A DNA stretch of 64,000 bases from positions 3,348,001 through 3,412,000 of the forward strand of contig OZ176057.1 in NCBI GenBank assembly GCA_964247055.1. Reading direction: 5' to 3'. The notes beneath the pieces were generated by a model. The model was not told the origin of the DNA and searched no databases. It saw only the letters and a program-made list of their open reading frames with translations. A program made the translations under genes and the position numbers. How positions within the stretch are numbered: the stretch's first letter is position 1; the number at the start of each line of letters is the position of its first letter. The stretch is from Paragordius varius (taxonomy: Eukaryota > Animalia > Nematomorpha). Shown piece by piece: positions 2,415-58,417 of the stretch.

Positions 2415-5400
2415 GTATACTTGGAAGAAAAAAAGATTTAAAAAAATTATTTTGTGGACTACTTTTTTGAAATAGGTGGTATTTTACGGGGGTAGCGGGT
2501 AAAAAGAGGGCCTAAGTTAAAAAAGCGAGTCGACTATGTTTGGCGCGATCAAAAATAAGTAAACATAAATCACATTTGAAATTGAATGGTCCAACACGTT
2601 CTCCGGAAAATAATTTCAACCTGTTTTTTACACAGGCTAGGCCCAAACTGGGGGCCTATTTCCAAAAAAGGGCGAAGCTTTTGTAGGGACAGTTATTAAT
2701 GATTACATTTTTTCCATATTTGGATTTTGTTGGGTTCACCGGTTTTCCGGAAACAGATCACAAAGTTACATGAAGAATCAGTTTTTAACGGGTAGCTCCT
2801 CAGCAGCTATCATCAAAATAAAAGCTTTGCTAATTTTTTTGCCTTTTAACAGGGAATACGTGAAATTTATATAGAATTTTTACGGACTCATACTTAGGGA
2901 AAAAAATCGATTAAAAAAATATTTTTGTGGATGATCTTTTTTGAAAAAAGTGGTATTTTAGAGGGCCTAAGTTAAAAAAGCGAGTCGACTATGTTTGGCG
3001 CGATCAAAAGTAAACATAAATCATATTTGAAATTGAATGGTCCAACACGTTCTCCGGAAAATAATTTCAACCTGTTTTTCACACAGGCTAGGCCCAAACT
3101 GGGGGCTTATTTTCAAAAAAGGGCGAAGCTATTGTCGGGACATTTATTAATGATTATATTTTTCAATGTTTGTATTTGAATTAATTCACCGGTTTTCCGG
3201 AAACAGATCACAAAGTTAAATGAGAAATCAGGTTTTAGCGGGTAGCTCCTTACCCAGCAGCTATCATCAAAGAAACGGGGGACTAAAATTTTTGCCTTTA
3301 AACAGGGAATACGTGGAATCCATATTGAATTTTTACGGTCTCATACCTTGGGCAAAAAATTGATTAAAAAAATATTTTTGTGGATTATTTTTTTGAAAAA
3401 GGTGGCATTTTACGGGGGTACCGGGTAAAAAGAGGGCCTAAGTTAAAAAAGCGAGACGACTATGTCCGGCGCGATCAAAAATAAGTAAACAAAAATCATA
3501 TTCGAAATTGAATGGTCCAACACGTTATCCGGAAAATAGTCTCAACCTGTTTTGTACACGGGTTAGGCCCAAACTGGTGGCTTAATTCCAAAAAAGGGCG
3601 AAGCTATTGTCGGGACATTTAATAATGATTACTTTTTTTCGATATTTGGATTTGATTGGGTTTACCGGTTTTCCGGAAACAGATCACAAAGTTACATGAT
3701 GAATCAGTTTTTAGCGGGTAGCTCCTTACCAAGAAGCTATCATCAAAGAAACGGTGGACTAAATTTTTTGCCTTTAAACAGTGAATACGTGGAATCCATT
3801 TTGAATTTTTACGGTCTCTTACCTTGGGCAAAAAATCGATTGAAAAAATATTTTTGTGGACTATTTTTCCGAAAAAGGTGGCATTTTACGGGGTAGCGGG
3901 TAAAAAGAGGGCTTAAGTTAAAAAAGCTAGACGACTAGGTTCGGCGCCATTAAAAATAAGTAAACAAATATCATATTTGAAATGGAATGGTCCAACACGT
4001 TCTCCGGAAAATAGCCTCAACCTGTTTTGTACACAGGTTAGGCCCGAACTGGTAGCCTAATTCTAAAAAAGGGCGAAGCTATTGACATTTATAAATGATT
4101 ATATTTTTTCGATGTTTGGATATGAATGGGTTCACCGTTTTTCCTGTACCAGATCACAACATTCCATTTTTATTTATATATATTACCAAAAATAATGTTT
4201 TATTATACATATATTTTTTAACATCCTTTACACATGATAGAAACTTTTTATTCAGCAGCTATCATCAAAGAAACGGTAAACTAAAATTTTTGCCTCTTAA
4301 CAGGGAATACGTGGAATCCATATTGAATTTTTACGGTCTCATACATTGGGCGAAAAATAGATTATAAGAAATATTTTGGTGGACTGTTTTTTAAAAAGCT
4401 GGCATTTTACGGGTAGCGGGTAAAAAGAGGGCCTAAGTGAAAAATGCGAGACGACTATATTCGGCGCGATCAAAAATAAATAAACGAAAATCATATTTAA
4501 AATTGAATGGTCCAAAACGTTATTCGGAAAATTGTATCCACCTGTTTTTTACACGGGGTAGGCCCAAACTGGGGGCCTAATTTCAAAAATGGGCAAAGCT
4601 TTTGTTGGGACATTTATTAATGCTTACATTTTTTCCATATTTGGATTTTTTTGGGTTCACCGGTTTTTTGGAAACAGATCACAAAGTTACATGAAGAATC
4701 AGTTTTTAGCGGGTAGCTTCTTACCCACCAGATATAATCAAAGAAACTCTTTACTAAAAATTTTGCCTTTTAACAGGGAATACGTGCAATTTATATTAAA
4801 TTTTTGGAATCATACCCTGGGCGAAAAATAGAATCATAAAAATATTTTTGTGGACCTTATTTTTAAAAAGGTGGCATTTTACGGGGAGAGCGGGTAAAAA
4901 GTGGGCCTAAATCAAAAAAGCAAGATGACTATATTCGATATTTGAAATTGAATGATCCAACACGTTCTCCATAAAATTGTCTCAAAGACACAATTTTTGT
5001 GGACTTCTGTTTTCAAAAAAACCCGTTTTTCACACGGGGTGGGCCCGAACTGGGGGCCTATTTCAAAAAACGGCGAAGCTATTGTCGGGGCATTCATTAA
5101 TGATTATTTTTCGATGTTTGGATTTGAAGGGGTCTACCGGTTTTCCTGTACCAGATCACAAAGCCAGCAATTTCAATTTTTATAAATTTATAGATTACCA
5201 TAAATAATGTTTTATTATACATATATTTTTTAACATCCTATACATATGATAGATACTCCCTCAGCAGCTCTCATCAAAGAAACGCTTGACTAAAAGTTTT
5301 GCTTTTTAACAGGGAATACGTGGATTTTATATCGAATTTTTACGGACTCATACCCTGGGCGAAAAATAGAATCATAAAAATATTGTGGACTTTGTTTTTT

Positions 5401-5800
5401 AAAAAAGTTGGTATTTTACGGGGGGAGCGGGTAAAAAGAAGGCCTAAATCAAAAAAGTGAGTCGACTATGTTCGGCGCGATCAAATATAAGTAAACAAAA
5501 ATCATATTTGAAATTGAATGATCCAACCTGTTATCCATAAAATTGTCTCAAAGACACAATTTTTGCGGACTTCTGTTTTCAAAAAAACCCGTTTTTTACA
5601 CGGGGTGGGCCCGAACTGGGGGCCTAATTCCAAAAAAGGGCGAAGCTATTGACATTTATTAATGATTATATTTTTTCGATGTTTGGATTTGAATGGGTTC
5701 ACCGGTTTTCCGGTACCAGATCACAAAGCCAGCATTTTCCATTTTTATAAATATATAGATTATCGATTTTACGTTTTTATATCCGTACCTGGCTATGAAA
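2415..5800 (+). repeat. Tandem satellite, ~7 units of ~455-540 bp, each a trimer of ~145-175 bp sub-repeats
   Basis: Anchor gagggcctaagttaaaaaagcgag and variants at 2506, 2961, 3432, 3907, 4427, 4901, 5438. Internal self-similarity such as ttgaaattgaatggtccaacacgttctccggaaaata vs ttggatttgaatgggttcaccggttttccggaaaca. Confidence 0.95.
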
Positions 5801-7809
5801 CGGCCAAAAATCCCTTAGGATATAAAAACATTTATATATTGATGCTGAATTATAGCCTTAGATCTCTAATTTTAAATTGTGTTATCAAATAATTTTAAAA
5901 AAACTTATTAACTTACATTGGTCAACATATAAGTCTTTGCTATGTTAAGTTGGATCATAAAAATAGTGTAAGATAATGAATGCATTTATTAGAAAAATAG
6001 ATTTAAACATATAGAAGGTATTTACAATAACAAACCACATAAATATAAATTAAGGATAATCAATGACGGGATTCGCATGATATATACAAAGATATACGTG
6101 TAAACTAATAGACAGATTATTTGCATCATAATACAAAATTATAATTATATTATCATTTATACAATTTAATATAAATCTAACAAATTTGAATTGGTATTTA
6201 ATGAAATATCTGAGGTAGAAATGGGAGATGTTTTCATAATATCATGCCGTCGTCCATATGTTTTAAACGCCGTAAATCATCCCTTTTCGGAAACTTTCTA
6301 ATGTTGAAGCAAAAATTTTAAATTTTATTTTGCAACCTCGGCATTTTTGTCTTTAGTTTTAAAAAAATTGCCCATTTTGGACGTGTTATAAATATCAGGG
6401 TTTACTATTATTTTATTAAAATAATGTTTTGCTTTTTATATATAATTTTTGCTTTATTTTAGTAAAATTTATTGAAATAAAGCACTTTCTCCAAAAAATA
6501 CTATTTAGCATATTGTTCCCAAATCCTACCATTTTCTGATATGGAGGAATTATATCCCTTGTAACATTGATCTATCAAATTATATATTTCATTAGGGTAT
6601 TTTTACACAAAAAAAATTTAAAATTATTTGGCCTACACGCGTTCCGAAAAATCATTCCAAAATAACATACAATATATAATTGTTTGAGAATGACCTGCCT
6701 GTATTTAAAATTAACCCCTCAATTAAACCCTCCTGTTCCAAAAGGTATACTTAAATATTTTTTTACATATGCGAGGAATAGAATTGCTTTTTTATAACCT
6801 AGAGCTAACTAATATCCCCATAATATTCCGATTCCGGCCTTTCTTAATTCGCTGAGTACGGCTTCACCCTCTGTAAAATGCATTTTACAATATAAATACA
6901 ACTTTGGTTAAGGTAAATTTTCGTCTAGGCATGAAATGTATATTAATATTGAGAGCATTATTCCGTTCAAAGCCTTAGTTCTCCGCTTGAAATAACTGAT
7001 AGATAGTGTTTTATTCTCAGCGAAATTCACCATATTATAAATGACGTGTTTAAAATTTTTGTCGAAATTATGAAAACTACCCTACCAAATTATTATAACG
7101 TAATGCAAACTTCTCGAACAACTAATCATATTTTATGAGTTTAATTATGATATTAGTAATTTACTCATAAATGCAAAAATATTAATCAATATATTAATTG
7201 ACCCTTGAATAGGGTCGCATCCTCTCTTAAATAAGCCATTGTATGAAATAACGTAAGCCAATTTATAGACAACCATATGGATTCAATCATTATCATTGAT
7301 AGGTATTGTATAAAATGCATAGTTAGACTAGTGCTAGTACCTTAGTAGGGCTTTATGCTTTGAAATATGCCATCCTTTTAAAATTTCTAATACCAATTTG
7401 AAAATCCTAATAAACTTAAATTGAAATATAATTTTGATTTTTCTTATTTAAGTCAAATCAACAACTTAAAACTTGAAGACCCTTTCTGTAAAACACGCCG
7501 CTACGAAAATATAACTTGGCAACTTATATTCAGATATGGTTACATATGGAAACATTAGAAACTAATAATTTTTGACATAAGGAAAAAAATATATCAATCA
7601 AAGCGCTATTTTGGAATTAGCCTTTGGGCAGAGCCCTACCCAATGTAAAATAAGCCATGACATAAAATAACCTGGCATTAAATTAAATCAATAATTAAAT
7701 GTTGATTTTTTTTATTTTTAGATGAGCCAATATTTTACATCTACCCCTTGTTTAATAATAATTATTCCATTTTTAATAAATTATCGATTAGTTATATATA
7801 TATATATTA

Positions 7810-8251
7810 GGTTTCTATATAATATTATATATAGAAATAGAATCGGGACACAGCAGAGTAAATAATGAATTAAAAATATTTGTCCAAGCATATATTATAC
7901 AAAGAAATTTGATTTCCAAAAAAATTATAAATTTAAGAGTGTTTTATTGTTTATAAATACGGGTTAATAGAATATGAATAGTTCATCTACTGCTGGTATA
8001 TAAAATATTGTATATATATATATATATATATAAATTATCTAAAAATCACTGTTATTTTATTTACCCAGCAGTAAATGACTATTCATATTCTATTAATCCC
8101 GTTATTATAAAACAATATACTCTTAAAATTATATTTTTTTTTGGAAATCAAATTTCTTTGTATAATATATGCTTGGGACAAAATTTTTAATCCATTATAT
8201 ACACTGCTGTGTCCCAATTCGATAGGTATATAAGAGTTTATATAAAAGATC
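7810..8251. mobile_element. Palindromic MITE, PIF/Harbinger (Tourist)-like
   Basis: Long inverted arms (gggacacagcag...ctgctgtgtccc), GG termini, TTA/TAA flanks; orthologous copy at 38711-39131. Confidence 0.7.
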
Positions 8252-8309
8252 TAATTGCTTTTCAAAATTATAAAAAATTTTTTTACTAAATTTTGACCGT
8301 TTATCAAAA

Positions 8310-8388
8310 ATGAAGATATTTTTTGCCATCTTATTTGTAACAATGTGTATTTTGTTTCAATTTAAACATGCGTTCGCTGGAGACGGTG
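8310..8388 (+). CDS. Signal-peptide exon (exon 1) of secreted micro-exon gene, copy A: MKIFFAILFVTMCILFQFKHAFA-GDG
   Basis: ATG, basic n-region, hydrophobic core, A-F-A cleavage motif; G|GTAATT donor; 74-nt intron ending ttttgcag; 77/79 nt identical to 39191-39269. Confidence 0.85.
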
Positions 8389-11300
8389 GTAATTGATTTT
8401 TAATATAATTTATAAATTCATATTTAGCATTTCCGTATATAATGTTTAAAATTTTTTTGCAGTCTCAAAGCGCTCAGCATGTAACTTTATTTATAATATT
8501 TTTCAAGGCTTCGATCCTAACTGGCTCTAGAGATTTGGGAAGCACAGTTTCAAGGCTTATGAATCTATTTTAGTTGTTTCATAACATTTATTTTCAAATC
8601 GGTTTTCTATAAAATAAAAATAAAATCTTCAAAGGTAGGAGAATCGGTTTCAATTGCAACCCGCTAATTTCGGTTCCACTTTTTTTGAGCTGGTTAGATT
8701 GAAGCCCTGTTTATGATTACTTTAATACACAAATTGAATTATTTTATAAACCATTTTTCAATCAAAAGCAACATTTTTTCATCCCGCAACATTCCTTCAA
8801 GCAAAGACAAGATTTCAACCAACAGCAACAGTTTTTTAGCAAACGCAACAACAATCGAAAAACTGCGTTTTTTAAAAATTGTCTTCGCTTGAAAAATATT
8901 GCGTTTGCTAAGAATGTTGCGTTTAATTGATACAATATGGCGTTTGTTTGAAAAAATGTTGCCTATGACTTATAAATAATATCTTAATAATAATTTTTCC
9001 ATACAGATGAAGATTATTACGGGTATTCGTATTTATATATTATTACTAACCAAAAAATAATAAAATAATATGATTTAAAAACCTTTAATCATTTTGAAAA
9101 TACACCAGTATATGAAAAAACAGCTAAATGGAAATAAAAAATAGGTTCCTATTATTACAGTGTGTGCAAAAAAAATTTTTTTTGAGATAGATTATGACCA
9201 GCGTATTCATTTGCCGCAAAAATTTTTATTTGTTGACAACCTAGTTTCTGAAATATTGAGAGAAAATCGAAATCGGAAAAAAGTGAAAATTAAGGATAAT
9301 TAAGGATAATTTAAAAAATAATGATAAAATCTGAAATATTATCGTTTATTAACATTTTAGGGGATATTTTCAATATATAAATAGCCTAAAATCATATAGT
9401 TAGGGATTCTATAAAATTTCGGGTCAAAAGATGGCGTTTTTCTTTTATCACACTTAAACAAAAAAATTAATGAAACTATATTAAAATATTTTTTTTAATA
9501 TTTACTACCTAAACTCACTATTAAAATATTAGCATTCATATTTATTTAGGAAAAACTTCTATATCAAAATAAAACCAAAAATATTGATTTTTAATTTTTG
9601 CATTTTGTCATGTGGTTTATGAGTGTATAAAAAATTTATACTGTTTTATTTTGGATTCTTAAATGAGTGGGAATTATTAAGTATATAATTTATGCAAAAT
9701 AGGATTGAAAATTAGTTAAATATCAACCAACAATCCGTACAAATCCCAATACAAATATTAATTTGTCATAAAACAGACTTGTTTAAGGAAATTGTAAGGA
9801 TTGTTGGTTGATATCCACTACTTTTAGATCCTATTTTGCATAAATTATATACTTAATAATGCCTAATCATGTAAGAATTCAAAATAAAACAGTATAAATT
9901 TTTTATATACTTATAAACCAGATGACAAAAAAATGCAAAAATAAAAAAAACAATATTTTTGGTTTTATTTTGATTTAGAAATTTATTTTACTGAATATAA
10001 TATGAATGTTAAGATTATAATAGTGAGTTTAGGAAGTAAATATATAAAAAAAAATATTTTTATATAGTTTCATTAAATTTTTTTGTCTTTTAAGTGTAAT
10101 AAAAGAAAAACGCCATCTTTTGACCCGAAATTTTATAGAAAACCTAACTATATGATTTTAGGCTATATTTATATATTGAAAATATCCCCTAAAATGATAA
10201 TAAACGATAATGATTCAGATTTTATCATTATTTTTTGAATTATCCTTAATTATCCTTAATTTTCACTTATTGCCCGATTTCGATTTTCTCTCAATATTTC
10301 AAAAACTAGGTTGTCAATAAATAAAAAATGTTGCGGCAAATGAATACGCTGGTCATAAGCTATCTCATGAAAAAAAATTTTTTCATTAAATCAAAACGAC
10401 CCTCTTTTTTGCACACAGTTTTACATTACTTTGTTTATTTAAGGACAAATTTGTTTTTTAACACATGCTACTGTGTTACTAATCTTATAAAAATAATGTA
10501 AATAAGCCAGCATAAATTTGCATTCTAATAAAATGACCAATCAAATCGAAGTGTTGAGAAAATTTGCGCTTTTTACAGGGGTCCAAAAAATTTTAAAATT
10601 TTGAATTTTACATAATTAAATTGTTTTTATATAACACTGGACAACAAATTTTTCTGCCACTTGAGTTTTTTGCATTTTCTGATATTTAGTATCATTTTAA
10701 CAGTAAATCTGATATAAAAATTATAACTCGATGGAAGAATTTTGTATAATTTGATTTTTTGATTATGCGCCCTCTTTATAAAAATTTTACTAAAAAATGG
10801 TTTTCTTTAAAAATATACAAGTAATGCCCATTTGTAATATATCATTCGAAAGAGTAATAAAAACTCTATAAAATGCATACTAATATGTATTACATCGACA
10901 ATTAATATTGGACACAAAGAGCGACAAACGCGCGAAGCGAGACCATTTTTTTTAAATATTATATTTTTAAAACTAATGGATGAAAATAGCTCAAACTTTG
11001 TTTAGATGGTATGAATGTCCAAAGAAGATAACAAAGTTATTTTGATTAAAACATTTTTTATTGCTTTTATGTCCTCAAAACAGCCATTTTTAAGTTTTTT
11101 GTTTTTTAAAAATTACCATCTCATCAATATTAATTTATTTTCTTTACGAAGCTGATAATTTCGAAATTTTAAAGATAAAAATAAAATTTAAGGTATTTTT
11201 GAACTTTTATAGCCATTATGTAATAAATTTATAGTTATAACTATGCATTTTAGTATCCACTAGGTAAAATATTTAAGATAATAATTTTAATTGAAAAAGC

Positions 11301-14300
11301 AAACCAGCTTTTTCAAACATTTTTTTTAAATTAAATACTAATATAACCCTAATAATTATATTAAAATAATTTATATGATTTTCATAGTTTGTCAGTGAAA
11401 ATTCTTGATTTATTTAAGGATTGAAAATTTCGACCATTTAAATCCAAATAACTTTATCATCCGATTGATTTAAATGACTTACTACCATTTAAAAGATGCA
11501 GTTTTTTGCGCTCTTTCGAATGATATAAAATACATGGCTTCATATCTAAAACTTTTAATTTTCAAAATTTCGAGTTTAATGTTAAATCGGGGCCAAAAAT
11601 TATCGATTAACTCTAATATAAAAAAATTCTTGCATGGTAGAATTTTCTTTTTAGATATACTAATGTACTTTAATGAATTAAATTTTAAATTTACAAGAAT
11701 GGCAGTTAAAAAAAGTTAAAATTTGGTGTCTAGTGTAATTTATGATAAGTAATATTTATTGGGGTAAACATTTGGCTCTTAAATAAATCATATTAAAAAA
11801 TCTGCGCAAATTGGCCATTGTCCTGATACTTTGAGAAATTACCACAAAAACGGTAACATCTCTCTTGTATCGCCCAAAGGCAATAAACAAAAAATACCTG
11901 ACAAGAATACAAAAAGTCAAAATAATCAGTTCAAATATTAAACATTTGCCCAAATAAATTATCATAATTAGAAATCATAATATATATTAAATTAATATTT
12001 AATTATTTGTAGTGAAAGTAAGCATTTTTTTTTAATTTCTATCGAACGAATAAATGTTTATATTAGATAATTTTTTTTTAATAACTAATATGATATAGTT
12101 ATTAATAAAAATCTATAAGGTCCTTAGGATAAGTTATTTAAAATGTAAAAAATATCATTTTGAAAACTATCCAAAATCTAATGATTTCTCTCAATTTTAT
12201 ACCATTTACAGCTCAAATTGACCCTTGAACAATTAAATGTGTTTTCGAACTAATATTATTCATTTTAAGATGAAATATATCTTTATGGCATAGTTTATTA
12301 TTTTTTTAGTATTATTTTAATTTTAAACAAATTATTTTCAAAAAATATATAATATAGAGGTAATTTATAATTAATTTTAGGGTGAATTTAAGTCCAAGGA
12401 TGAATTTGAATTATTCAAGGGTAATTGTTTAAGGGTGATGATTGTAAATGTTATATTTTTATTTAAGGCAAAGGTGTTCAACACAAAAGGCTTCGCGCAC
12501 CGCACATTAAATTTAATAATGGGCAGTTTTTGTTGATGTCACCAAAAAAACCATAGAAACGAAAAAATTGATCGCGATACTTTAGATAATATCTTTTATA
12601 TCGTCTCCTTCCCTGTCTAAAGCGTTTTATATATTTTTGGTTGTTAACTTGAAGGGCATTTTAAGTCGCATTTATTAGGGGTGCAGAGAAAGAACATTTA
12701 TTTGCGCTTCAAAAGCGGTGTTTTTAATTTTTGATTAATATTTATTATAGTAGTTTCCCCAGGTATGGTACCATTTGGCTTTATATAATATAACTTTTTA
12801 ACCATATACCACATATTCAATTTCATTATTTGTTATTATTATAGATGAGTAAGAATATTATTTAATTTGACCACAATTCGTTTTATATTTTATGTTATAA
12901 TTACATTTATTGAATTAGATATCAACTGGGTAAATTAATATATTTATAATTATAATTATATAAAATTCTACCAAACAAATATCCAAATAGACGCCATAAT
13001 CCTTGATATCATAAAATTTATTTCAAATATCTGTATATAAGTATACATAAAATTGTTAAATTTAAATAAAATAATTTACAAATATCTTTAAAAATCCAAC
13101 CACATTTGATTTGACCATATAAATTATTTAATTGATTGTGTTCACAATTTCCATTTCTATCAGCCCTATTTTTCAGTGCATATATGTAAAAAAAGGCTCA
13201 TTTCTGGCACTCGTTACATGAATCAATCCCCTTGTTTCTAAAAATAATTAATAATAAACCGTGGACATGACACGACACCACTCATAGTTGAGTGATTTTT
13301 ATAAATATTATACAAAATAATAACTTTCAAATACCTATTTTTTGAAATAAAAAGGCGCCTGGTGTATCAGCCTCCTTTCCTCTCCCCTAACTAAGTGGTC
13401 AATTCTACTGTGATTTCCAATAAAACATAATTGAGTTATATTGTTAACAATCATTTATCAATGTCGGGCACCAATGCAGCAAAAATTGAAATTCAGAAAC
13501 TTAACTTAAAAGATACATGTTTTTTTAAAAAGAATTATATTTAAAATCCGTTTATTAAAAACACTCATCATATCCAAAATAAACAGTATGTATATTACAA
13601 TCAATTATATTAAATCAAAATTGTGTACATTTAATATCTTCACAAAATTTATATAATTTTATAAATAAATTATTTTTGGCATGGTGTAATTCCTTTTATA
13701 ATGTATAATATAATGTAATTAGCATTTTCGTTTTTCTATTTTCTCCCCAAAAAGTCTCCTTCCTTAACCAATAAGTTTCATTTTATATGTTGCAAATTTA
13801 AATTAATAACTGTCTTTTATTTATCCATTTTCTCTAAGAATGAAGCTAATTAAAACTATAAAGTTTTGAGTAAAAATTGATACACAACGTGAAAATATAA
13901 AGACAAATATTTTTATAACAGACAATCCTTAAAACCTTTATTTTTTTAGATCTAGGTCTTGATGAAAATGGTGAAGAGATATAGACAGTAATTATTAATA
14001 AATTTTAAACAATTTGTTTTAATTGTTATCACTTCATTACCGTTTCACTTTTTTGATTAGTTCAATATCAAATCAATAGGGTATGTTATATATAATAATT
14101 TTAACAATTATACATATTTTATTTCACAATGCATTTTCTCCCAAACTTAGATGAATAAAACCTAATATTTTTCTATTACCATATATCAACACTTTTTAAT
14201 CAAACTTTATACTTATTTTAATTAATTGCCCTTATAAAATTATTATTTTAAGGTTTTATATGAATATATGTTCATATAGAATATTATATATCCCTTATTT

Positions 14301-14736
14301 TTTAAATTTTAGTCAAAATAACTAAATTTGCATTAAGGGTATAAGTAAATAATGTTGTTCTGAACCGAATCAACATGGCATATTATAAAAGACAATAAAA
14401 TACTCTAAATATAATTAAAATTATTTTTAAACAGATAAATATTGAGTTTGATTGTAAATGTGTTTTTCAAGGCTTCAACTAATTTATATGTAATTAATTT
14501 TTGTGCCATCAAATTTTTTTTTAAATATTCATTTTGATTTTTAGATGTATCCAAATCAAAATGTTCCATGTATCAAATTATTTAATTCTGGCTTAATTAA
14601 TATTGCTTAAACCAATAAACAATTTGTGCTTATTCTCCCAAATAAATATTTAGTAGCCTATGTATTATTTTTTATCAGGATCATCTTAAAAACAGACGTT
14701 ATAAACACAAAGTTTTCTTTAAATTTAAGATTTTAA
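8310..14736 (+). CDS. Putative micro-exon gene for a small secreted protein, copy A (splice path and frame unresolved)
   Basis: AG/GT-flanked islands with positional counterparts in copy B: 8310-8388, 8463-8480, 9007-9028, 12013-12017, 12751-12762, 12845-12848, 12919-12929, 13164-13185, 13950-(13970 or 13987), 14061-14080, 14313-14338, 14435-14453, 14545-14569, 14679-14736. Many intervening introns are 70-110 nt. Confidence 0.62.
8749..8981. mobile_element. Small TACCATTT-family MITE with aacgcaacattttt-type subterminal repeats (intronic)
   Basis: Inverted gcaacatttt/aaaatgttgc repeats; paralog 40770-41004 and dispersed copy 63315-63543 have TACCATTT...AAATGGTA ends. Confidence 0.7.
9158..10421. 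mobile_element. 1.26-kb foldback non-autonomous Tc1/mariner-like element (intronic, copy A only)
   Basis: CAGTGTGTGCAAAAAA terminus, ~600-bp inverted arms around a short spacer near 9750-9790, TA flanks; empty site ctattattacattattttg at ~41161 in copy B. Confidence 0.85.
10635..11735. mobile_element. Non-autonomous Chapaev3-like (CMC) DNA transposon (intronic, copy A only)
   Basis: CACTGGACAACAAATTT...AAATTTGGTGTCTAGTG termini with TAA target duplication; closely similar copy at 18477-19589; absent from copy B. Confidence 0.85.
12200..12453. mobile_element. TACCATTTAC-family MITE (present in both duplication copies)
   Basis: TA-flanked TACCATTTACAGCTCAAATTGACCCTTGAACAA...GTAAATGTTA; ortholog 41980-42212. 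Confidence 0.75.
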
Positions 14737-15304
14737 GTATAGTTTGATCCGTTTGATATTAGTTGCAATAATTATTTTCCTTTACAAAAAATAAATATTA
14801 TGACATATATAGAGCTTTGTTTAGAATTTACTTTAATTGGAGTAAAAATGAAATTTTTAACAACTTATGTGTAGTCAGAAAAAAATTAATTACGGATCAT
14901 GCCCAAACTAAGGATATTCAGAATCCTGTGACAAAGTTTTTATGAGAAGCTTTTTATTTTGGGAGAAGTTAGTATCTAGAAATATACCTGCAAGTTTCAT
15001 ATTTTACGCTCTGATTTTAATGTAAAAATGGGGGTAATTGTAAATAATTTGAAACTACTTAGAAAAGTAGCACAAAGCGTTAGTGCTAAAAATTATCAAA
15101 ATTCTTATAAAGCGATGAAGATAAAAAAACTAGATTAAATATGTCAAAAACCCGATTTTCGCGATATTTCAATGTATGAAGATTGATGTCGCTTGGTCTT
15201 TTAAAAATTGGCTATATTATAGCTAAAAATGTTATATTCTACAAGAAATAAATTTTTTGTAAAATATAAAAATAAAAATTACAACAAAAATTTAAATATT
15301 ATTA

Positions 15305-18476: not shown

Positions 18477-19589
18477 CACTGGACAACAAATTTTTCTGCC
18501 GCTCGAGTTTTTTGCATTTTCTGATATTTAGTATCATTTTAACAGTAAATCTGAAATAAAAATTATAACTCGATGGAAGAATTTTGTATAATTTGATTTT
18601 TTTGATTATGCGCCCTCTTTATCAAATTTTACTAAAAAATGTTTTTCTTTGAAATATACAAGTAATGGCCATTTGTAATGTATCAATTCGAAAGAGTAAT
18701 AAAAACTCTATAATATCCATACTAATATGTATTACATCGACAGCTAATATTGGACACAAAGAGCGACAAACGCGCGAAGCTAGAGCCTTTTTTAATTATT
18801 ATATTTTTAAAACTAATGGATGAAAATAGCTCAAACTTTGTATAGATGGTGATGAATTTCCAAAAAAGATAACACAATAAAGTTTTTTTGATTAGAACAT
18901 TTTTTTATTGCTTTTATGTCACTCAAAACAGCCATTTTTAAGTTTTTTGTTTTTTAAAAATTACCATCTCAATATTAATATATTTTCTTTACTAGGCTGA
19001 TAATTTCGAAATTTTAAAGATAAAAACAAAGTTTAAGGTATTTTTGATCTTTTATAGCCATTATGTAATAAATTTACAGTTTTAACTATGCATTTTAGTA
19101 TCCACTAGGTAAAATATTTATGTAATAATTTTTATTGAAAAAGCAAACCAAAAGCTTTTTCAAATATTTTTTTTAAATTAAATTAATATAACCCTAATAA
19201 TTATATTAAAATAATTTATATGATTTTCAAATTAGTTTGTCTGTGAAAACTCTTGATTTATTTGGGGATTGAAAATTTCGACCATTTAAATCCAAATAAC
19301 TTTTACATCCGATTTATTTAAATGACTTACTACCATTTAAAAGATGCAGTTTTTTGCGCTCTTTCGAATGATATAAAATACATGGCTTCATATCTAAAAC
19401 TTTTAATTTTCGAAATTTCGAGTTTAATGTTAAATCGGGGCCAAAAATTATCGATAAACTCTAATATAAAAAAATTCTTGCATGCTAGACCAATTTTCTT
19501 TTCAGATATACTAATTATGTACTTTAATGAAATAAATTTTAAATTTACAAGAATGACAGTTCAAAAAAGTTAAAATTTGTTGTCTAGTG
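18477..19589. mobile_element. Non-autonomous Chapaev3-like DNA transposon, second copy
   Basis: CACTGGACAAC...GTTGTCTAGTG termini, TTA target duplication; high identity to 10635-11735. Confidence 0.87.
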
Positions 19590-36902: not shown

Positions 36903-38671
36903 TATATACAAAGAGATATACGTGTAATCTAATAAACAGGTTATTTGCATCATTATACAAAATTGTAAATAGAAATATATTATCATCACTACAATTTGTA
37001 TTATACATATAAAAGTATAAATCTAACAAATATGAATAGGTAACAGTCTCTTAATCATTCAGAGGTGATAGAAATGGTAAATGTTTTCATAATATCATAC
37101 CGTCGTTCATCATGTTTCAAAATACGTTACTACTCGTCTCACCGAAATTTTGCCGTAAATCAACTCAACTTTTTGGGAAAAACTTTTTAATGTCAAAAGT
37201 TAAAATGATAAAATTCTATTATGCAAAATCGGCATTTTTGTCTTTAGTTTAAAAAAATTAGACCATTTTGGACGGGTATAAAATATCAGGGTTTTGGAAC
37301 CCTGTATCTAAAATATATTTAATAAAAATATTGTTTTGCATTTTATATATAATTTGTGCTATATTTTAGTAATATTTATTGAAATGAAGCATGAAGCCTT
37401 CTTCAAAAATATTATTTATATTGTTCCCAAATCCTGCCATTTTATAATATGGAGAAGTTACCACAAAAGGGTGATAATTTTCTGTAATCCCTTGTATCAT
37501 TTATCTATCAGAATTATTCATTAGGGTTTTTGTGGACACATAAATTAATAAAAAAAATATTTTTATATTGGGCCTACACGCGTTCCGAAAAATCATTCCA
37601 AAGTAACATAGAATATATAATTGTTTATGAATAACACACCGCTTCATCCCCACAATTAGGCCCTAACCCGTATCAAAAGGTATATTTAGGAAAAAATCTG
37701 CAAAAATCATGGCTTTACACAATTTCTAGAAAACGTGTAGACCTAAATATTTTTTTACATATGCGAGGAATAGAATCGCTTTTTTATAACCTAGAGCTAA
37801 CTAATCTCCCCATAAAATTCCGATTCCGGCCTTTCTTAATTCGCTGAGTACGGCTTCACCCTCTGTAAAATGCATTTTACAATATAAAATTTTGAAAGTA
37901 TTTTTCGGTTTATAGCCTAAGTTCCCCGCTTTAATTAACTGATAGATAGTGTTTATCCCCTGCGAAATTCACCACATTATAAATGACGTGTTCAAAATTT
38001 TTGTGGAAATTATGAAATCATATGAATTAATTAAATTCTGTTTTAGCTTTATCCTACCATATTATTATAACGTGATCCAAACTTCTCGAAAAACTAATAA
38101 TATTTTATGAGTTCATTTAATATTGATAATTTACTCATAATGCAAAAATATAATCAGAAATATATTAATTAACCCTTGAACAGGGTCGCATCCTATCTTA
38201 GATAAGCCATTGTATGAAATAACATAAGCCGATTTATAGACCATATGAATTTAATCATTATCATAGGTATTGTATAAAATCGATAGTTAGAAGGGTGCCA
38301 GTCCCTCAATATGCCATCCTTTAAAAATTTCTAATACCAATTATCTTAATAAAATTTAATTGAAACATAATTTTAATTTTTAATATTTGAGCCAAATTTC
38401 AACTATATTATATTACTTAAAACCGAAAGGCCTTCGCTGTAAAACACGCCACTACGAATTTTTGACATAAAGGAAAAAAATATATCAATCAAAGCGCTAT
38501 CTTGTAATTAGCCTTTGGGCACAGCCCTACCCAATGTAAAATAAGCCATGGCCCTGGCATTAAATTGAGTCAATAATTGAATGTTGATTTTTTTCATTTT
38601 TAGATGAGCCAATATTTTAAATATACCCCTTGTTTAATAATTATTCCATTTTTAATAAATTACCGATTAGT

Positions 38672-38708
<37 letters not shown>

Positions 38709-38710
38709 TA

Positions 38711-39131
38711 GGTTTTTATATAATATTATATATAGAAATAGAATCGGGACACAGCAGAGTAAATAATGAATTGAAAATTTTTGTTCAAGCATATATTATA
38801 CAAAGAAATTTGATTTCCAAAAAAATTATAAATTTAAGAGTGTTTTATTGTTCATAAATACGGGTTATAGAATATGAATAATTCATCTACTGCTAGTAAA
38901 AAAAATATTATATTATATATATTATATAAATCACTGTTATTTTATTTACCCAGCAGGAGATGAAATATTCATATTCTAATTAACCCGTTTTTATAAAACA
39001 ATAAAACACTCTTATCCAAATTTTTTTGGGAAATTAAATTTCTTTGTATAATATATGCCTGGGACAAAAATTTTTAATTCATTATTTACACTGCTGTGTC
39101 CCAATTCTATATATAATTTTATATAAAAACC
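38711..39131. mobile_element. Palindromic PIF/Harbinger-like MITE, ortholog of 7810-8251
   Basis: GGTTTTTATATAA...TTATATAAAAACC termini, TTA/TGA flanks, long inverted arms. Confidence 0.72.
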
Positions 39132-39190
39132 TGATTTCTCTTCAAAAATACAAAAATTTTTTTTTACTAAATTTTGTCCGTTTATCAAAA

Positions 39191-39269
39191 ATGAAGATAT
39201 TTTTCGCCATCTTATTTGTAACAATGTGTATTTTGTTTCAATTTAAACATGCGTTCGCTGAAGACGGTG
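39191..39269 (+). CDS. Signal-peptide exon (exon 1) of secreted micro-exon gene, copy B: MKIFFAILFVTMCILFQFKHAFA-EDG
   Basis: Tail of ORF 39044-39277; G|GTAATT donor; 75-nt intron ending ttttgcag; differs from copy A by one synonymous (TTT/TTC) and one G/E change. Confidence 0.85.
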
Positions 39270-42200
39270 GTAATTGATTTTTAATATAATTTAAAAATTC
39301 ATATTTAGCATTTCCGTATATAATGTTTAAAAAATTTTTTGCAGGCTCAGACCCAGGTAATTACTTAATTTATGATATTCGAGGCTTCGATCCTTAACCG
39401 AATCAACCCAGCTCTAGAGATTTGGCGATCTCAGTTTCAATGCTTAATCTATTTTAATTTATTCATAACATTTATTTTTGATCCGGTTTTCTATAAAATA
39501 ACACTGATCAACAAGGTTTTGCACCACCCCATTATTTTTGCATTTTCTGATACCTAATGGCATGGAAAGGCCAAAACAAAAAAGAAAATTGAGGCCACCA
39601 ATAGGATTTTTCCGAAATTTAATTTTTAAATTTATATTTAATTTAAAAATAACAATCATTCCTCGTGTATATATGTTTAAATATTCAAACGCACAAGTCG
39701 ATACAAGTAATATTCCATGCATGAATAACAAAATTCTAGGCATTAAATAAGATACTAAGCAAGCTAAGAGCCAAAGTATTAAAAATCTAAAAGGGGCTTA
39801 TGTATAGTGTGATAGATTCGGGCGGCTGCACAAGCTCTGCATATCCCCCAAGCGATCCAATTATGCCAGATATGGCAAAGATAACAATAAGTAATCGTAA
39901 AGCCCGATAAGAGAGACTTGCAAGCAAAATCCAGGCAAATTGACATGTCAAATTAACCAATTCACAGAATAAAGTTAGATAAATTCTACAATTAAATTGA
40001 ATAAAAAGATTAGGTAAATACAAATGGTCCAATCCCATAATAGTAAATTCTACTAAAAGTGGCTGCACAACATCCATCTGAAATTAAAAATACAAAACAA
40101 CCAATAATTTTAAAAAATAAAGTATATCCACTAGGTATAAATAAAGGATTTTTTGTAAGAACCAACTCAAGAAAAAAAGCCTAATAAGTACTCGAAAGAA
40201 CGAAAACTAACAAAAAAAATATAGCCTATCTAAAAGCCGAAGGTTTAAACCATAGAATGCCTTTTTTAGTATTTTTTTAAAATTTTTTTATACGTATTAA
40301 AAATTCACTTGAAAGGAAAAGACTAAATTTTGATGTTTAAGTCCGTACTATTTTTTTCTCTCTGATATTTAAATGACATATTTATATTCAAAAGATAGAG
40401 TTTAAAACGCTTTATTAAATGATATTAAGTTTATAATATAATAACATTTTATTATAAAGTTATATGTAATTTTCTCTCGATTTTCTCTTGTTTTTGAAAA
40501 ATTGTAAAACCTATAATACTTCAAAATTCTGATTGGCGGGATCAAAAAATTTTTCACATTCGGTTTTAAAACACTGAAATTAGTCATAATTTAAAAGTAT
40601 GAGTGGTGGTGCTCAAAAATGTCCAAATTTGTCGACTAGTGTAATTCAAAGGTAGGAGAATCAGTTTTAATTACAATTTACCCGCTAATTTCAGTTCCAC
40701 TTTTTTTGAGCTGGTTAGATTGAAGCCTTGTTTATGATTACTTTAATACACAAATCGAAATATTTTCTATACCATTTTTCAATTAACAGCAACATTTTTT
40801 CATCCAAACGCAACAATTTTTCAAGCAAAGACAAGATTTCAATCAACAGCAACAGTTTTTAAGCAAACGCAACAACAATCAAAAAACTTGCGTTTTTAAA
40901 AATTTTTGCTTAAAAAAAATTGCGTTTGCTTGAAAGAATGTTGCGTTTAATTTAAAAAATGTTGCGTTTTATTGAAAAATGTTGCCTATGACTTAAAAAT
41001 GGTATCTAAATAATATTTTATTCTATACAGTTCAGTTTCTTCCCGGATATTTGTAATTATATATTTTATACCAACCAAAAAATAATTATGTAACAACCTT
41101 TATTATTTTGCAGACCAGTATACGAAAAAACAGCTAAATGTTGAAATGATCAATAGTGTCCTATTATTACATTATTTTGTTTATTTAATTTGGACAAAAT
41201 TTGTTTTTTAACACACGTTACTTTGTTACTAATTAACTAACATTAATGTAAATAAGCCAGCATAAATCCACATTCTAATACAAAAATGCCCAATCAAATC
41301 GTAGGGTTGAGAAAACTTGCGCCTATTACAGGGGTCAAAGTTTTTTAAAATTTAGAATTTTAAAATATTAAATTGGTTTTAAATAATCATTGATATTTGT
41401 AATATATATTGGGGTAAAGCATCTGGCTTTAACCAAATAAATCATATTAAAAAATGTGTGCAAATTTGCCACTGTCTAATACTAAGAAGTTACCACAAAA
41501 ATGGTAACATCTTTCTTGTATCATCCAAAGGCAAAAAAATAAAATCTGACAATTTTGATACTTTTATACTTGAGAATATATATTCATTTCATCAGTATAT
41601 TCATTGATATCCCCAATTTTATGGACAGTCTTAAAAACAATGGAAATTTTTGTTTTTTTTAAAGAAAAAGAGCCCAAAATGCAAAAAATTGAAAATAATC
41701 GGTTTAAATATTAAACAGTTATCCAAATAAATTAACATATTCTTAAAAGAACCTCATATATATTAAATTAATATTTAATTTTATATAGTGAAAGTAAGCA
41801 TTTTTATTTTTTAATTTCTATCCAACGAAAATTTAGTTTATTTTTAAATAAACTATTTTAACTAATATGATAAAAATGATAAAAATCTATAAGGTCCTTA
41901 AAATAAGTAATTCAAAATGTAAAATGTAAAAAATATTTTTTTAAACTCTATCCAAAAATAAAACTTTCTCTCAATTTTATACCATTTACAGCTCAAATTG
42001 ACCCTTGAACAATTAAATTATGGTTTTTAAACTAAACTCATTATTTATATGAATATCTTTATGGCATAGTTTATTATTTTTTCAGTATTGTTTTAATTTA
42101 AAAATTATTTTTAAAAAATATATAAAAATATAGGTAAATTTTAATTAAAACATATAATTTATTTTAGGGTATATTTGGATAGTTCAAGGATGAATTTGAA

Positions 42201-45200
42201 TCGTAAATGGTATATTTCAAAAGGCTTCGCGCACCGCACATTAAATTTAATAATGGGCAGTTTTGGATGATGTCACCAAAAAAACCATAGAAACGAAAAA
42301 ATCGATCGCAATACCTTATATAATATCTTTTATATCGTCTAATAATCCCTGTCTAAAGCGTTTTATATATTTTTGGTTGTTAACTTGAACTACAGGTTAA
42401 GTCGCATTTATTAGGGGCGCAGAGATAAAACATATATTTGCGCTTCAAAAGCGGTGTTTTTATTAATTGATTATTATTTACTGTAGTGGATGAGCCAGGT
42501 ATTGTATTGCCATTTGGCCTTATATAATATAACTTTTTGAACATATACCAGATCATTTCATTATTTGTTATCATTATTATTATTATAGATGAGTAAGAAT
42601 ATTTTTTAATTTGACCACAATTTTTGCTTTAAATTTTATGATATAATTACATTCATTGAATTAGATCTCATCAAATGGGTAAATTAATATATTTATAATT
42701 ACCATTATATAAAATTCTACCGAACAAATAAAATAGACGCCAAAAAATTTATTTTAAATATTTGTAGGAGTAAAGATTATAAGTAAACATAAAAATGTTA
42801 TAATTAAAAGAAAAAGATTTTACAAATATTTTTAAAAAAGCAACCAACTTTGATTTTACCATATATATAAATATTTAATTATTCACAATTTCCATTTCTA
42901 TCAGCCCCATTTTTCAATGCAAATATGTAAAGAATTAAAGTTAAATAGCATAATTCTATTTTTTATGTAGAGGCGTAGCTTTCATTTCTGGCACCCGTTG
43001 CATGAATCAATCCCTTCTATTTTAAAAATAATTAAATTTAAACCGTGGACATGACATGAGACCACTCATAGTTGAGTGATTTTTATAAATATTATAAAAA
43101 ATAATAACTTTCAAATACCTATTTTTTGAAATAAAATTAAAATAGCGCTCGGTATATCAGCCCCCTTTCCTAATTAAACTATTTTTGGCAAGTGATGTAA
43201 TTTTTTTATAATGTATAATATAATTAGGATTTTCAGTTATCTATCTTCCCCCAAAAAAATCTCCTTAACCAATTATATTTATTTATATTGATATTCTTTG
43301 CTCTTGGACTAGGAAACTATTTAATTTAATACAGTAACGATAGTTATTATTGACCTATTAGATATTTATTTGGCGAGTGTATATGTATGTTGCCATGTAT
43401 AAGTTTCATTTTATTTGTTGGAAATTTTATATTTATAACTGTCCTTTTTATCCATAATATTCTATAAGAATGAAACTAATTAAAATTAAAAGTTTAGAGT
43501 AAAAATTGAAATAATACAAGGTAAAGACATAGAGACAAATATTTTTTTGAAAGACAATTATCAAAACCTTTATTTTTTAGATATAGGTTATGATGAAAAT
43601 GGTGAAGAGATATAGACAGTAATTTTTGTAAGTATTAAACAATTATTTTAATTGCTATTACTTCATTACTTTTTCACTTTTTTGTCCTAATTTAACGTAT
43701 CTAGTTCGTTAATAATTTACTGTTCATTTTAGTTGAAATTTTATGTAACATTATCAAGTTTTAGATATAAAAAAATATTTTTTACAGTTTTGTGACTTCT
43801 AGACTCTAAAATGGGGACAGCTCCAAAACGCGCTGCAACAGCTGATAAAATAAAAATAAATTCAGTTTTACTGGTAATATGTAGCTTGAGAGCTTTTTAA
43901 AGTTAATTATCTATATTTTTAACCATATTATACATTTAATTGCCGGTTGCATTTGTGATTTAAGAAAATTATACAAAAAATGGCGGCAAAAATGTTGAGA
44001 TGAGGATTAACAATTTTACATTTTTTTAAAAATTATTTGTGTAATGCTCATAGCAGGCTAAATAAAATATATTCTCAAATTCGGCCTAATATCTTAAATA
44101 CTTTTTAAGATAATCAAATGTTAAATCGCTTTCGCATAAAATACTACCCCACAAAGTAATGGAGTGTAAAATATATTATTTACAGTCTACATTTAAATAA
44201 TTGCTTATATCACACGATTGTTGGGTAATCAAAAACGCAGTAGTTTATGGAAAAAGCAAAAAAATGTTGAATAAACAATCTTTTTTTTCCATACGCTTTG
44301 CAAATTGCCCTACTACAGTGTGAAATAAGCAACCATTAAAATGGATATTGTATTATGACCTTAATTTAAAAGTTAGGTACTAGGGGCTAAAAGTTATGCT
44401 ATTGTTAAAAACTATATTTTTCAGAGAGACCTATTCAATTTTTGTTTAAAATGGCCATTTATTTGAAATGTTTGTAATATAATGATATGAAAACCGGGTC
44501 ATTGTCATACGAGTTAAAATTACATTTAAATGAGCCATTAAACTTTTTCTTACTTAGTTAAATAAAGTAAATAATTGGATTTAAGAACTTCGGGGTTAAA
44601 CCCTATTTTGAAATTAATGTTGCACACTTAAGTATTTATATGTCAAAAGCTATATTTTAAAATTAAACAAAGCGTTATAAAATCAAGTTATCTAGTTATT
44701 GTTTTTGAAGTCTTTTCAAAATTCAGCTGTCTAAAACTCTCTTGATCAGCGTAAGGTTAATTTTATTCAAATTAGTATTATATTTAAGTCATTCAATTTT
44801 AAGCTAATAAATTTATTCTAAGATTGCACACCAGTTCCATTTCTAAGAAAATGACTAAAATTTTGAGCATCTTTTATATAAGCTACATTAAATCGGATTC
44901 GATGTAATTTGCTTTAGTTTAATAAAATTAATTTTAAAGCTTTAGCCAATATCTTTCAACATGTTAAACATTTTATATTGAGTTGCGTCGCAACGTTTTT
45001 ATGGTTTATATTAGATATCAAATTTTGATAATAATAATTATAATCATTAAAATAACGGTGGCTGAAATTTAAATTTTCTGAAAGCCAAACACACTAATAT
45101 TTTTCCAAAGAGGTCAGCTATACCGAAATATTTTATGTGTATGAAAAATTCTAATTGACACTTAATTCGTTAATTTACAAACATTTGATATTTGCAAAAA

Positions 45201-46140
45201 TTTGTGAAAGTGTGTATAAACAAATTTAAAGATAATAAATAAGTTTAAATGGCAACGATCTAGCTGACAATTGATTAATAGTTAACCTGTTTTTTTGAGT
45301 TAAAATTTGATAAAATATATACCAATGTCTATATATTTTCCAATGCAAGCTCCGAATTTTTTATGCTAAAATGCGGCCCACTAAAAGATAGGTTTTGAGC
45401 ACGATATTCTATAAATACTTATAATTTTGAAAGTTTTAAGCTCAATATGTACTTGTTTATTGACGCAATTCTCAAATGATAAAATATTTAATATATTTTT
45501 TAGTTCAATATCAAGCTAGTCATCAATAGGGTATGTTATACATAATAATTTTAAAAATTATACCTAATTTACATAAAGCAATTTCTATATGAATAAAACC
45601 TAATATTTTTCCGTTACCATATATCTTTTCCAATCAAACTCGATAGTTATTTTAATTTATTTCCTTTTAAAATTGATATTATGAGGTTTTATAAGAATAT
45701 ATGGTCACATAGTAGTTTTTATATCCCTTATTTTTATGATTTTAGTCAAAATATCTAAATTTACATTAAGGGTATAAGTTAAATAATGTTGTTCTGAACC
45801 GAATCAACATGGTAACATATTATAAAAGCCAATAAACTATAAATATAATTAAAATTATTTTAAACAGATGAATGTTGAGTTTCATTGTAAAGGTGTTTTT
45901 TAAAGCTTAAACAAATTTATATGTGATTTATTTTTGTGCCATCCATTTTTTTATATTTGCATTTTGATGTTTAGATGCATCCAAATCAAAATTTTCCATG
46001 TATCAAAATTTATATCTTGCTTAATTAATATTGCTTAAACCAATAAACAATTTGTGCTTATTCTCCCAAATAAATATTTAATAGCCTATGATATATTATT
46101 TTTTATCAACAGGATCATCTGTTTAAAACAGCCGTTATAA
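39191..46140 (+). CDS. Putative micro-exon gene for a small secreted protein, copy B (splice path and frame unresolved)
   Basis: AG/GT-flanked islands: 39191-39269, 39345-39356, 41031-41052, 41789-41793, 42487-42498, 42589-42592, 42665-42678, 42768-42782, 42905-42926, 43581-(43601 or 43618), ~45504-45530, 45746-45771, 45868-45886, 45975-45999, 46113-46140. Confidence 0.62.
39502..40641. mobile_element. Chapaev3-like non-autonomous element in intron 2 of copy B
   Basis: CACTGATCAACAAGG...TTTGTCGACTAGTG termini with TAA target duplication; absent at the matching site (~8615) of copy A. Confidence 0.78.
40770..41004. mobile_element. TACCATTT-family MITE (aacgcaaca subfamily)
   Basis: TACCATTTTTC...AAAAATGGTA; ortholog of 8749-8981. 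Confidence 0.72.
41980..42212. mobile_element. TACCATTTAC-family MITE
   Basis: TA-flanked TACCATTTAC...GTAAATGGTA; ortholog of 12200-12453. Confidence 0.78.
43683..45497. other. ~1.8-kb segment present only in copy B, containing repeat fragments
   Basis: Copy A reads cactttttgattagttcaatatc contiguously at ~14046-14069; copy B has this extra sequence, including the acagtgtgaaataagcaaccattaaaatg MITE end at ~44315. Confidence 0.65.
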
Positions 46141-47427
46141 GCGAAAGTTTTCTTTAGAATTAAAATTTTGAGTATAGGTTCATAACGTTTGATATTAGTT
46201 GGAATAATTAGTTTTCTCTACAAAAAAAAATATTATGACATATATAGAGCTTTTGTTGAAAATTACTTTGATTAAGTTTAAAACGAGATTTAATTTAACA
46301 AGTATATATGTGTAGTGAGAAAAAATTAATTACGGATTATACCCAAACTAAGTAAATTCAGAGTTATGTGACAAAGTTTTTATGAGACGTTTTTGGGGGT
46401 ATTTTAGAAAAATACCCGCAAAGTTTGATATTTTAAGCTATGATGTAATTAAATGTAACGTATAAAATGGAGTGTGGGGTAATTGTGAATAATATGACAC
46501 TATTTAGAAAAGGAGCACATAGCATTAATGCTAAAACTAAATTATCAAAATTCATATAAAGCGATGAAGGTAATAAAACACTTCACTTTAGAATGCCAAA
46601 ACCCCCATTTTCACCATGTTTCAGTGTATAAAGATTGATGTCGCTTGGTAGTATAAAAATTTGCTATATTATAGCTAAAAATGTTAAATCTCATAAGAAA
46701 TTTATTTCTTGTGAAATTCAAATTAAAAACTTTTAGACACAAATTTTTGCAGTATTTTGCCCTTATTTTGAAAGTATTTATTATTTATGGACAAATATAA
46801 TCAAAAAAGTGGTAACTAAAATCAATTAAAGATTTTCAAATTAATTAAATTAAAATTATAATATAAAATGAATAATTAATTAAAAATTCTAACTGGGCTG
46901 GTGATTATTTTAGTCCATTTCTTATTTTGTAACCCAATAAAAAATAAGGTGTATATTGACATTTCAAAATATTAAATAAATTAAAAAATTAAATGCACCC
47001 CAAAAAATCATTTATTAATTATATATACTATGATGATTTCATATAAAATTATTTTGATATGTATGGAAAAAGAATGTTGTGTATCGATTATACATAAATT
47101 AGCCCTTGACATAAAAATAAAAAATAAAAATTATTTTGAAAATTACAAGTAAAAAATTTGCCGGAAAAGTTTAAAAAATATTTGATGATTATTCGCATCT
47201 ATTATACACATATACAACTTTATCTTTGGGATTGTCAAGTTTTTTGTATTGTGTGTTTGTTTTATATTCTCCATTTGACTCATAAAAATAGGACTACACA
47301 AAAAAATATTATGATAAAATTTATGAAACATGGTATAACATGGAAACCATTTGATTTTCATATGCAATAATTATTTACTGAATTAATATTATTTAAAAAT
47401 TACTATATATGTATACATATATATATA

Positions 47428-57975: not shown

Positions 57976-58417
57976 TTAGCGGTTAAACATTTCCGTTACT
58001 GTTGTGGTTTCGATTATATTTAAGGGTGATTCAATATTCTTACTAATGCAATTAGTAGCTAGATGATCGTTACAATTATTAGTTATTTCAAGCAGGGCCG
58101 GTTGTCGTTCCAAAATGATTAAAAGTAATTTATCAATGTATTGTCGTAAACGTTGATTCTCGTATGTTAACTGTTTAAGCAATAATGTTGGATTATGAAA
58201 ATTTTCATTGCTGCTACATTGGGTTTGCGTTAACTCATGGGCTAAATTCTGAGCGGGTTCTGTGTTATTATTGTGATTAAAAATTTGTTCTGTTTGGTTT
58301 GTAGTTTCATGCAAAGTATTTGTTGTATGATGCCTTTTTTCAAGTGTATTATTAGTTATTTTGGTATCCAATATATCTTGCCATATTTCACGTTTTTGTG
58401 CACTTATATAATTTTGT
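57976..58417 (-). CDS. Unassigned ORF / terminal exon, T/N/Q/H-rich with a coiled-coil segment
   Basis: Open for ~146 codons from a tatatag acceptor (KQNYISAQKREIWQDILDTK...LLKQLTYENQRLRQYIDKLLLIILERQP...) in very AT-rich DNA; AATAAA downstream. Confidence 0.45.

Follow-up and report, generated by a model that had tools for sequence, protein, structure and literature searches.

Within a 64,000-nt window of the Paragordius varius genome (contig OZ176057.1, the whole stretch analysed here), we compared the two direct copies of a segmental duplication, copy A and copy B, each of which contains a candidate gene with a signal-peptide exon followed by very short putative exons. At least one putative exon of the mature peptide has diverged far more than the non-coding DNA around it, while the signal exon is almost identical between the copies. 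Pooled together, the islands termed exons 2, 3 and 5 differ at 19 of 46 positions (p=2e-6, Fisher; 4e-4, permutation), and the background is 12.9% divergence over 3310 non-exon, ungapped, well-aligned columns 3' of exon 1. The excess divergence is real, but it contains no specific excess of replacement changes. We tentatively read the locus as a recently duplicated orphan gene that would encode a small secreted peptide, in which the signal and the splice scaffold would have been kept and the mature part would be diversifying, a reading that we rate as plausible and somewhat short of probable.

Divergence between the two copies

The copies are 9–10 kb each and lie in AT-rich animal DNA (24% GC around the gene), with non-coding sequence that is ~87% identical (~13% diverged). 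When the alignment is divided by region, the ungapped identity is 84–91%, in line with the roughly 80–90% that a first-pass annotation of this DNA had given for the flanking sequence. The identity is patchy and includes 14 runs at or above 95%, one of which covers 8277–8462. Transposon insertions differ by copy and interrupt the homology at each site (Table 1). DNA and protein searches of the 110.6-Mb assembly (44 contigs) found no third copy of the duplicated gene.

The strongest departure from this background is in exon 3, where only 11 of the 22 positions are identical in the ungapped alignment. The 11 mismatches give p=3e-5 in the Fisher test and p=0.003 in the empirical window test, and ~0.005 after correction for the 168 candidate AG..GT intervals. 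With gaps allowed, 14 of 21 positions are identical and two compensating 1-nt indels appear, so that the change amounts to a compensated frameshift in which five residues are rewritten and the 3' Gly-Tyr (GGG/GGA TAT) is kept. In addition, an unbiased island finder placed the first mismatch column directly after the AG, and the last column before the GT is also a mismatch, with both dinucleotides present in both copies; the frequency of AG x GT in the local DNA is 0.0014. Four 22-nt islands with identity of 50% or less occur in the ~5 kb alignment, three of which are hidden alignment shifts, leaving exon 3 as the sole genuine one.

As for a possible source of the altered segment, neither 22-mer recurs in the window and no donor for either version was found elsewhere in the genome. 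A genome match to exon 3 with two mismatches, on contig C9, was rejected as lying inside an unrelated satellite-like repeat. A micro-inversion was also rejected, as the reverse complement of exon 3 of copy A matches copy B at 3 of 22 positions, and so was the idea that exon 3 is the end of the repeat in intron 2, which stops at 8980.

Exon 1 behaves in the opposite way, with 77 of 79 positions identical. One of its two changes is synonymous and the other lies just past the cleavage site; the 23 residues of the signal peptide have one synonymous and no non-synonymous change between the copies. The start codon has an insect-type context (CAAAA-ATG), and by inspection and a simple rule the predicted product is a canonical signal peptide: MK, then a hydrophobic core of 14 residues, then the cleavage motif AFA. 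The surrounding 186-nt conserved block, which extends into the 5' untranslated region (5'UTR) on one side and through the 74-nt intron 1 on the other, stops precisely at the exon-2 acceptor.

The remaining two islands differ in kind. The difference in exon 2 consists of one 3-nt indel, a donor displaced by 3 nt (CAG/GTAATT in copy B, CAGCAT/GTAACT in copy A, with the slash at the splice junction) and 3 substitutions in the 12 aligned positions, which do not exceed the intron rate significantly (Fisher p=0.19). Exon 5 has 5 mismatches in 12 positions (Fisher p=0.013; empirical window p=0.04), a marginal value in that 5% of the 12-nt windows are equally divergent. When the 168 AG..GT intervals shared by the copies are ranked by divergence, exons 3 and 5 take the top two places among those that are free of gaps and at least 10 nt long.

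These results reproduce the identity counts of the first-pass annotation for exons 1, 3 and 5 (the last as 7 of 12 identical) and its remark that exon 2 differs in both length and sequence. It had also proposed the intronic rate as the yardstick for the islands; by this yardstick, exon 3 and the pooled islands stand above the background, exon 5 does so marginally and the substitutions of exon 2 do not do so significantly. The overall pattern that it described, a conserved signal with hypervariable mature exons, holds in exons 1 and 3, is weak in exon 5 and is mostly a matter of length change in exon 2.

Table 1. Positions in the window of the duplicated copies, the candidate gene and the insertions that separate the copies
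Feature	Copy	Position	Strand	Length	Remarks
Segmental duplication	A	6157-15293	+		blastn and MAFFT vs 37001-46746
Segmental duplication	B	37001-46746	+		same orientation, ~31 kb downstream of copy A
Conserved block	A	8277-8462	+		part of 5'UTR, exon 1, intron 1; 96.8% identical to copy B
Exon 1	A	8310-8388	+	79 nt	predicted signal peptide; phase-1 donor GTAATT
Exon 1	B	39191-39269	+		
Putative exon 2	A	8463-8480	+	18 nt	GC 50%; TCTCAAAGCGCTCAGCAT
Putative exon 2	B	39345-39356	+	12 nt	GC 67%; GCTCAGACCCAG
Palindromic repeat	both copies	8732-8980			inside intron 2; >226 genome matches; stops 26 nt 5' of exon 3
Putative exon 3	A	9007-9028	+	22 nt	
Putative exon 3	B	41031-41052	+	22 nt	
Foldback (long inverted repeat) insertion	A only	9165-10385		1.2 kb	3' of exon 3
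Insertion	A only	10640-11740		~1.1 kb	
Possible exon 5	A	12751-12762	+	12 nt	GC 50%
Possible exon 5	B	42487-42498	+	12 nt	
Candidate terminal exon of long model	A	13949-13983	+	35 nt	strong T-rich acceptor; phase 1 open to shared TAG in both copies; 32/35 identical; read by eye
Insertion	B only	39510-40640		~1.1 kb	
Insertion	B only	43690-45500		~1.8 kb	

Putative exons and gene models

In both copies, an AG precedes and a GT follows each putative exon. To judge these sites, six introns were rebuilt from myosin genes of the same genome, and their donors are GTAATT, GTAACT, GTATAA, GTCACT, GTTTTC and GTAGAT, with acceptors that are T-rich and end in TAG or CAG. The proposed splice sites are normal for this genome, since the donors GTAATT and GTAACT and the acceptor type match those of the myosin introns. 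Exons 2 and 5 have a GC content of 50–67% vs 24% in the background, and of the AG..GT intervals richest in GC, exon 5 alone is divergent. The frame that exon 1 sets, and that exon 2 enters in phase 1, runs without a stop through exons 2 and 3; in exon 5, the phase-1 frame is the only one that lacks stops in both copies. All of the exon length changes preserve the frame (3 + 3 nt in exon 2, net 0 in exon 3); by comparison, just 41 of the 111 intronic indels no longer than 12 nt have a length divisible by 3. We consider exons 2 and 3 probably real, and exon 5 a candidate that leans slightly toward the doubtful side.

Exon status is judged here from the sequence, and gene models with two, three, four or six exons are all compatible with the locus. 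In the three-exon model, copy B would reach a stop on the exon-3 donor (TTG-TAA), and in the four-exon model a shared acceptor (ACCAG/) ~80 nt further would lead to a stop within 2–6 codons. A long model that extends to exon 5 needs an intervening exon of length 2 mod 3, or skipping of exon 3, because the 22 nt of exon 3 shift the frame. Such a model could end at AT-GAG-TAA at 12845 or in the 35-nt candidate terminal exon (Table 1).

Several further observations concern the surroundings of the candidate gene. Directly behind a T-rich acceptor, the two copies share the identical sequence ATGAGTAAG (12845–12852 and ~42590–42597), which could represent either a closing Asp-Glu-stop beyond exon 5 or a 4-nt exon. 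Directly 5' of the possible exon 5 is a relatively GC-rich block of 267 nt (12484–12750), with 91% identity between the copies and no match elsewhere in the genome. It might belong to the conserved intronic elements known beside micro-exons, or be unrelated to the exon. Just 5' of the gene, an inverted repeat (7813–7924 and 8136–8247, 85% complementary) surrounds a TA microsatellite, and copy B has the same arrangement. A likely TATA box at ~8226–8236 is within the right arm of this repeat, and therefore the promoter of the gene may derive from a transposon.

Selection, mutation or chance

In the reading that we prefer, each copy would carry a lineage-restricted gene that looks intact and encodes a small secreted peptide, with exon 1 encoding the signal peptide, exons 2 and 3 encoding the start, perhaps nearly all, of the mature peptide, and intron 2 carrying a transposon-derived repeat ahead of exon 3. 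Following the duplication, the exons of the mature peptide would have been remodelled several times faster than the surrounding non-coding DNA by substitutions, by the two 3-nt length changes of exon 2, one of which is the donor shift, and by the compensated frameshift of exon 3. The block of 5'UTR, signal and intron 1, every AG/GT pair and the reading frame would have been retained meanwhile. Most likely, secretion and splicing are constrained and the mature peptide is allowed, or driven, to change, a pattern that paralogs for effectors, toxins and antimicrobial peptides also show.

A number of observations, given here and in the following paragraphs, weigh against this reading, and the first of them concerns selection itself. 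In the whole codons of exons 3 and 5 (27 nt), the proportions of non-synonymous and synonymous differences are pN=0.49 and pS=0.44, both far above the intron rate, with a ratio of non-synonymous to synonymous divergence (dN/dS) of ~1.2. The ratio of dN to the intronic divergence (dN/K(intron)) is ~5.7, which belongs with the excess over the intron rate and favors the reading. Since pS is as high as pN, however, the classical test does not show positive selection, and the proposal of the first-pass annotation that the mature N-terminal region is under positive selection is not demonstrated on these 27 nt. Moreover, given the two 1-nt indels in the gapped alignment of exon 3, a small number of complex mutations accounts for part of the difference between exon 3 and the introns.

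The similar pS and pN, the gapped identity of exon 3, the low number of substitutions in exon 2 (three in 12 aligned positions) and the small total sample of 46–52 nt speak for a real gene in which positive selection plays no part. Its mature peptide would then be unconstrained, or one copy would be decaying, and a few complex mutations (the compensated frameshift, multi-nucleotide changes and the donor shift) would mimic acceleration. We regard this explanation as rather unlikely, although it is the strongest of the alternatives. Even in the gapped alignment, exon 3 is 33% diverged and has 2 indels, compared to 13% and ~0.5 indels expected. Decay is further at odds with the ATG, signal peptide, splice dinucleotides and open frame, which are kept in both copies.

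The exons themselves can also be questioned. Exon 5 is no longer significant once the 168 candidate intervals are counted, and exon 3 is the only one that is significant alone. About 100 nt 5' of exon 5, a 7-nt island at 12654–12660 is equally strong and has no splice signals, and similar small islands without splice signals occur at 10484–10487 and 14839–14844. When exon 2 is simply read on, as in a two-exon gene, the frame remains open for 22 codons in copy A and 17 in copy B, with a 3-nt indel. Eight intervening candidates are frame-compatible with the long model, of which the only well-flanked one is a 5-nt TGAAA at 12013–12017, an implausible exon.

The protein searches lend the gene no external support either. 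They used the open frame around exon 1 only, as exons 2, 3 and 5 (4–7 codons each) are too short for protein tools. When the 79-aa frame that surrounds exon 1 of copy B was used in a word search, two candidates had words in common with it and neither scored. For the exon-1 frame, no credible match was found in 5.8 billion or 1.84 billion proteins (word search, full HMMER), known families of schistosome micro-exon genes (MEGs) included, which is a weak test in that it covers the signal exon only. A HMMER match, P0001 (E=1.4e-6), to the 40-aa frame of copy A was rejected as chance: it lies on an ENA contig and is built of four 51-aa units in tandem, each stretch is weak, it is absent from this genome, and its score is inflated by the tandem repeats. 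Pfam gave no match to exon 1, and Rfam and tRNA scans of the window gave no RNA gene. The blank protein searches carry little weight, since the H2B of this very genome is missing from a 15-billion-protein collection.

These observations would fit a plain two-exon gene, or no expressed gene at all, in which case the islands of exons 3 and 5 would be chance clusters of mutations between an AG and a GT. We consider this unlikely. The edges of the exon-3 island coincide with AG and GT in both copies, for which the chance is ~0.001–0.02. Further points in favor of exons are the raised GC content, the frames free of stops and the length changes that keep the frame.

A further alternative, which we find quite improbable, is concerted evolution, in which gene conversion homogenises the non-coding parts while the mature exons escape and show an older, true divergence. 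It is consistent with the patchy identity, and homogenisation has been proposed for the Hessian fly SSSGP genes (PMC2955719). In the same vein, the conserved signal block may be a gene-conversion tract instead of a product of purifying selection, as high-identity patches are common in this alignment; this too counts against the preferred reading. However, the periphery of the duplication (85%) and the gene body (84–91%) have the same divergence, and the copy-specific transposon insertions break up the homology. Concerted evolution would itself require selection, because the tracts must skip segments of 12–22 nt repeatedly.

Finally, the tiny exons could be targets of a mutational process and not only of selection, through hypermutation focused on exons, or templated replacement of patches, coupled to the splicing or transcription of micro-exons, which would fit the equal rise of synonymous and non-synonymous sites, ~3–4 fold over the flanking introns; to our knowledge, such an exon-focused mechanism has long been suspected in conotoxin-like genes and never demonstrated, and we give it very little credence.

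Among these explanations, we still tentatively prefer a duplicated gene for a secreted peptide with a diversifying mature part. The case depends on one exon of 22 nt and on sequence data, and we present it as a lead, not a result.

Neighboring features and comparison with known systems

Other features of the window lie outside the candidate gene or within the insertions. A repeat of ~520 nt (85–96% identical) that occurs at 11124–11641, in an insertion that copy B lacks, and at 18969–19489 is probably a young transposon. An array of ~475-nt tandem repeats at 2417–5762 has 5–7 units that are 61–90% alike, with a GC content of ~33%, and a similar satellite-like repeat is present on another contig (L026). 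On the minus strand, an open frame at 57979–58371 has a Rab11-FIP (RBD-FIP) C-terminal domain above the Pfam cut-off and is the last exon of a conserved gene. Also on the minus strand, a frame that resembles a signal peptide (MVKSLLTIILVLAYVG...) begins with an ATG at 50334 and reaches a phase-1 GT donor after 73 nt; a further micro-exon gene for a secreted product may start here. Retroelement remains comprise an open frame at 743–1195 on the minus strand, whose Pfam matches to aspartyl proteases are weak and below the cut-off, and a reverse-transcriptase-like open frame at 55194–55751 on the plus strand, which has no Pfam match.

A conserved signal and conserved introns combined with a hypervariable mature-toxin exon are familiar from paralogs of conotoxin and snake venom PLA2 genes. 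Those genes form large families with transcript and protein evidence, whereas the present locus is a two-copy orphan known from sequence alone.

The SSSGP genes of the Hessian fly are clustered paralogs for small secreted proteins, in which the promoter and 5'UTR, the signal region and the intron are conserved and the mature coding part is diversified (Chen et al. 2010, PMC2955719); both positive selection and homogenisation have been invoked for this 'unusual conservation'. Genes of the SSSGP type are further marked by salivary-gland expression and by release of the product into the host. The likeness to our locus lies in the 96.8% identity of 8277–8462 vs the 50% identity of exon 3 and the remodelled exon 2, in paralogs that are 31 kb apart. 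In contrast to the SSSGP genes, there are only two copies here, the mature part would be in tiny exons, and the introns other than intron 1 diverge at an ordinary rate.

In the MEGs of schistosomes, the signal peptide is in the first exon, the mature protein is assembled from very short exons, and dN/dS is higher in the mature part than in the signal (PMC4350168). MEGs also vary their proteins by leaving out micro-exons. Our candidate gene resembles them in its predicted signal-peptide first exon, its putative tiny mature exons and the faster mature part. Most MEG coding sequence is in micro-exons whose lengths are multiples of 3; here, putative exon 2 (18 or 12 nt) and possible exon 5 (12 nt) have such lengths and putative exon 3 (22 nt) does not. 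MEGs are reported to be restricted to flatworms. Membership in the MEGs is unsupported.

The bicycle genes of aphids encode secreted proteins with at least 5 and on average ~17 exons, internal exons that start at codon position 2 and paired CYC (Cys-Tyr-Cys) motifs, and they combine rapid coding divergence with a conserved structure (PMC9168663). The candidate gene has in common with them a predicted signal peptide, a phase-1 intron after exon 1 and rapid coding divergence in a conserved structure. As for codon position 2, putative exons 2 and 3 begin there, possible exon 5 has an open frame in that phase alone, and the exon after the 22-nt exon 3 cannot begin there; 3–6 exons can be proposed here. 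In-frame exons 2, 3 and 5 contain no cysteine and no CYC motif in either copy, and by this motif the gene falls outside the bicycle family.

The pattern described here is already known from the SSSGPs, MEGs and bicycle genes, to which this locus would add one more case. If its exons are real, it would be a clean, young example of a fixed secretion signal and splice scaffold with a rewritten mature peptide, and it would offer a small, tractable case in which selection, exon-focused mutation and escape from gene conversion can be set against one another.

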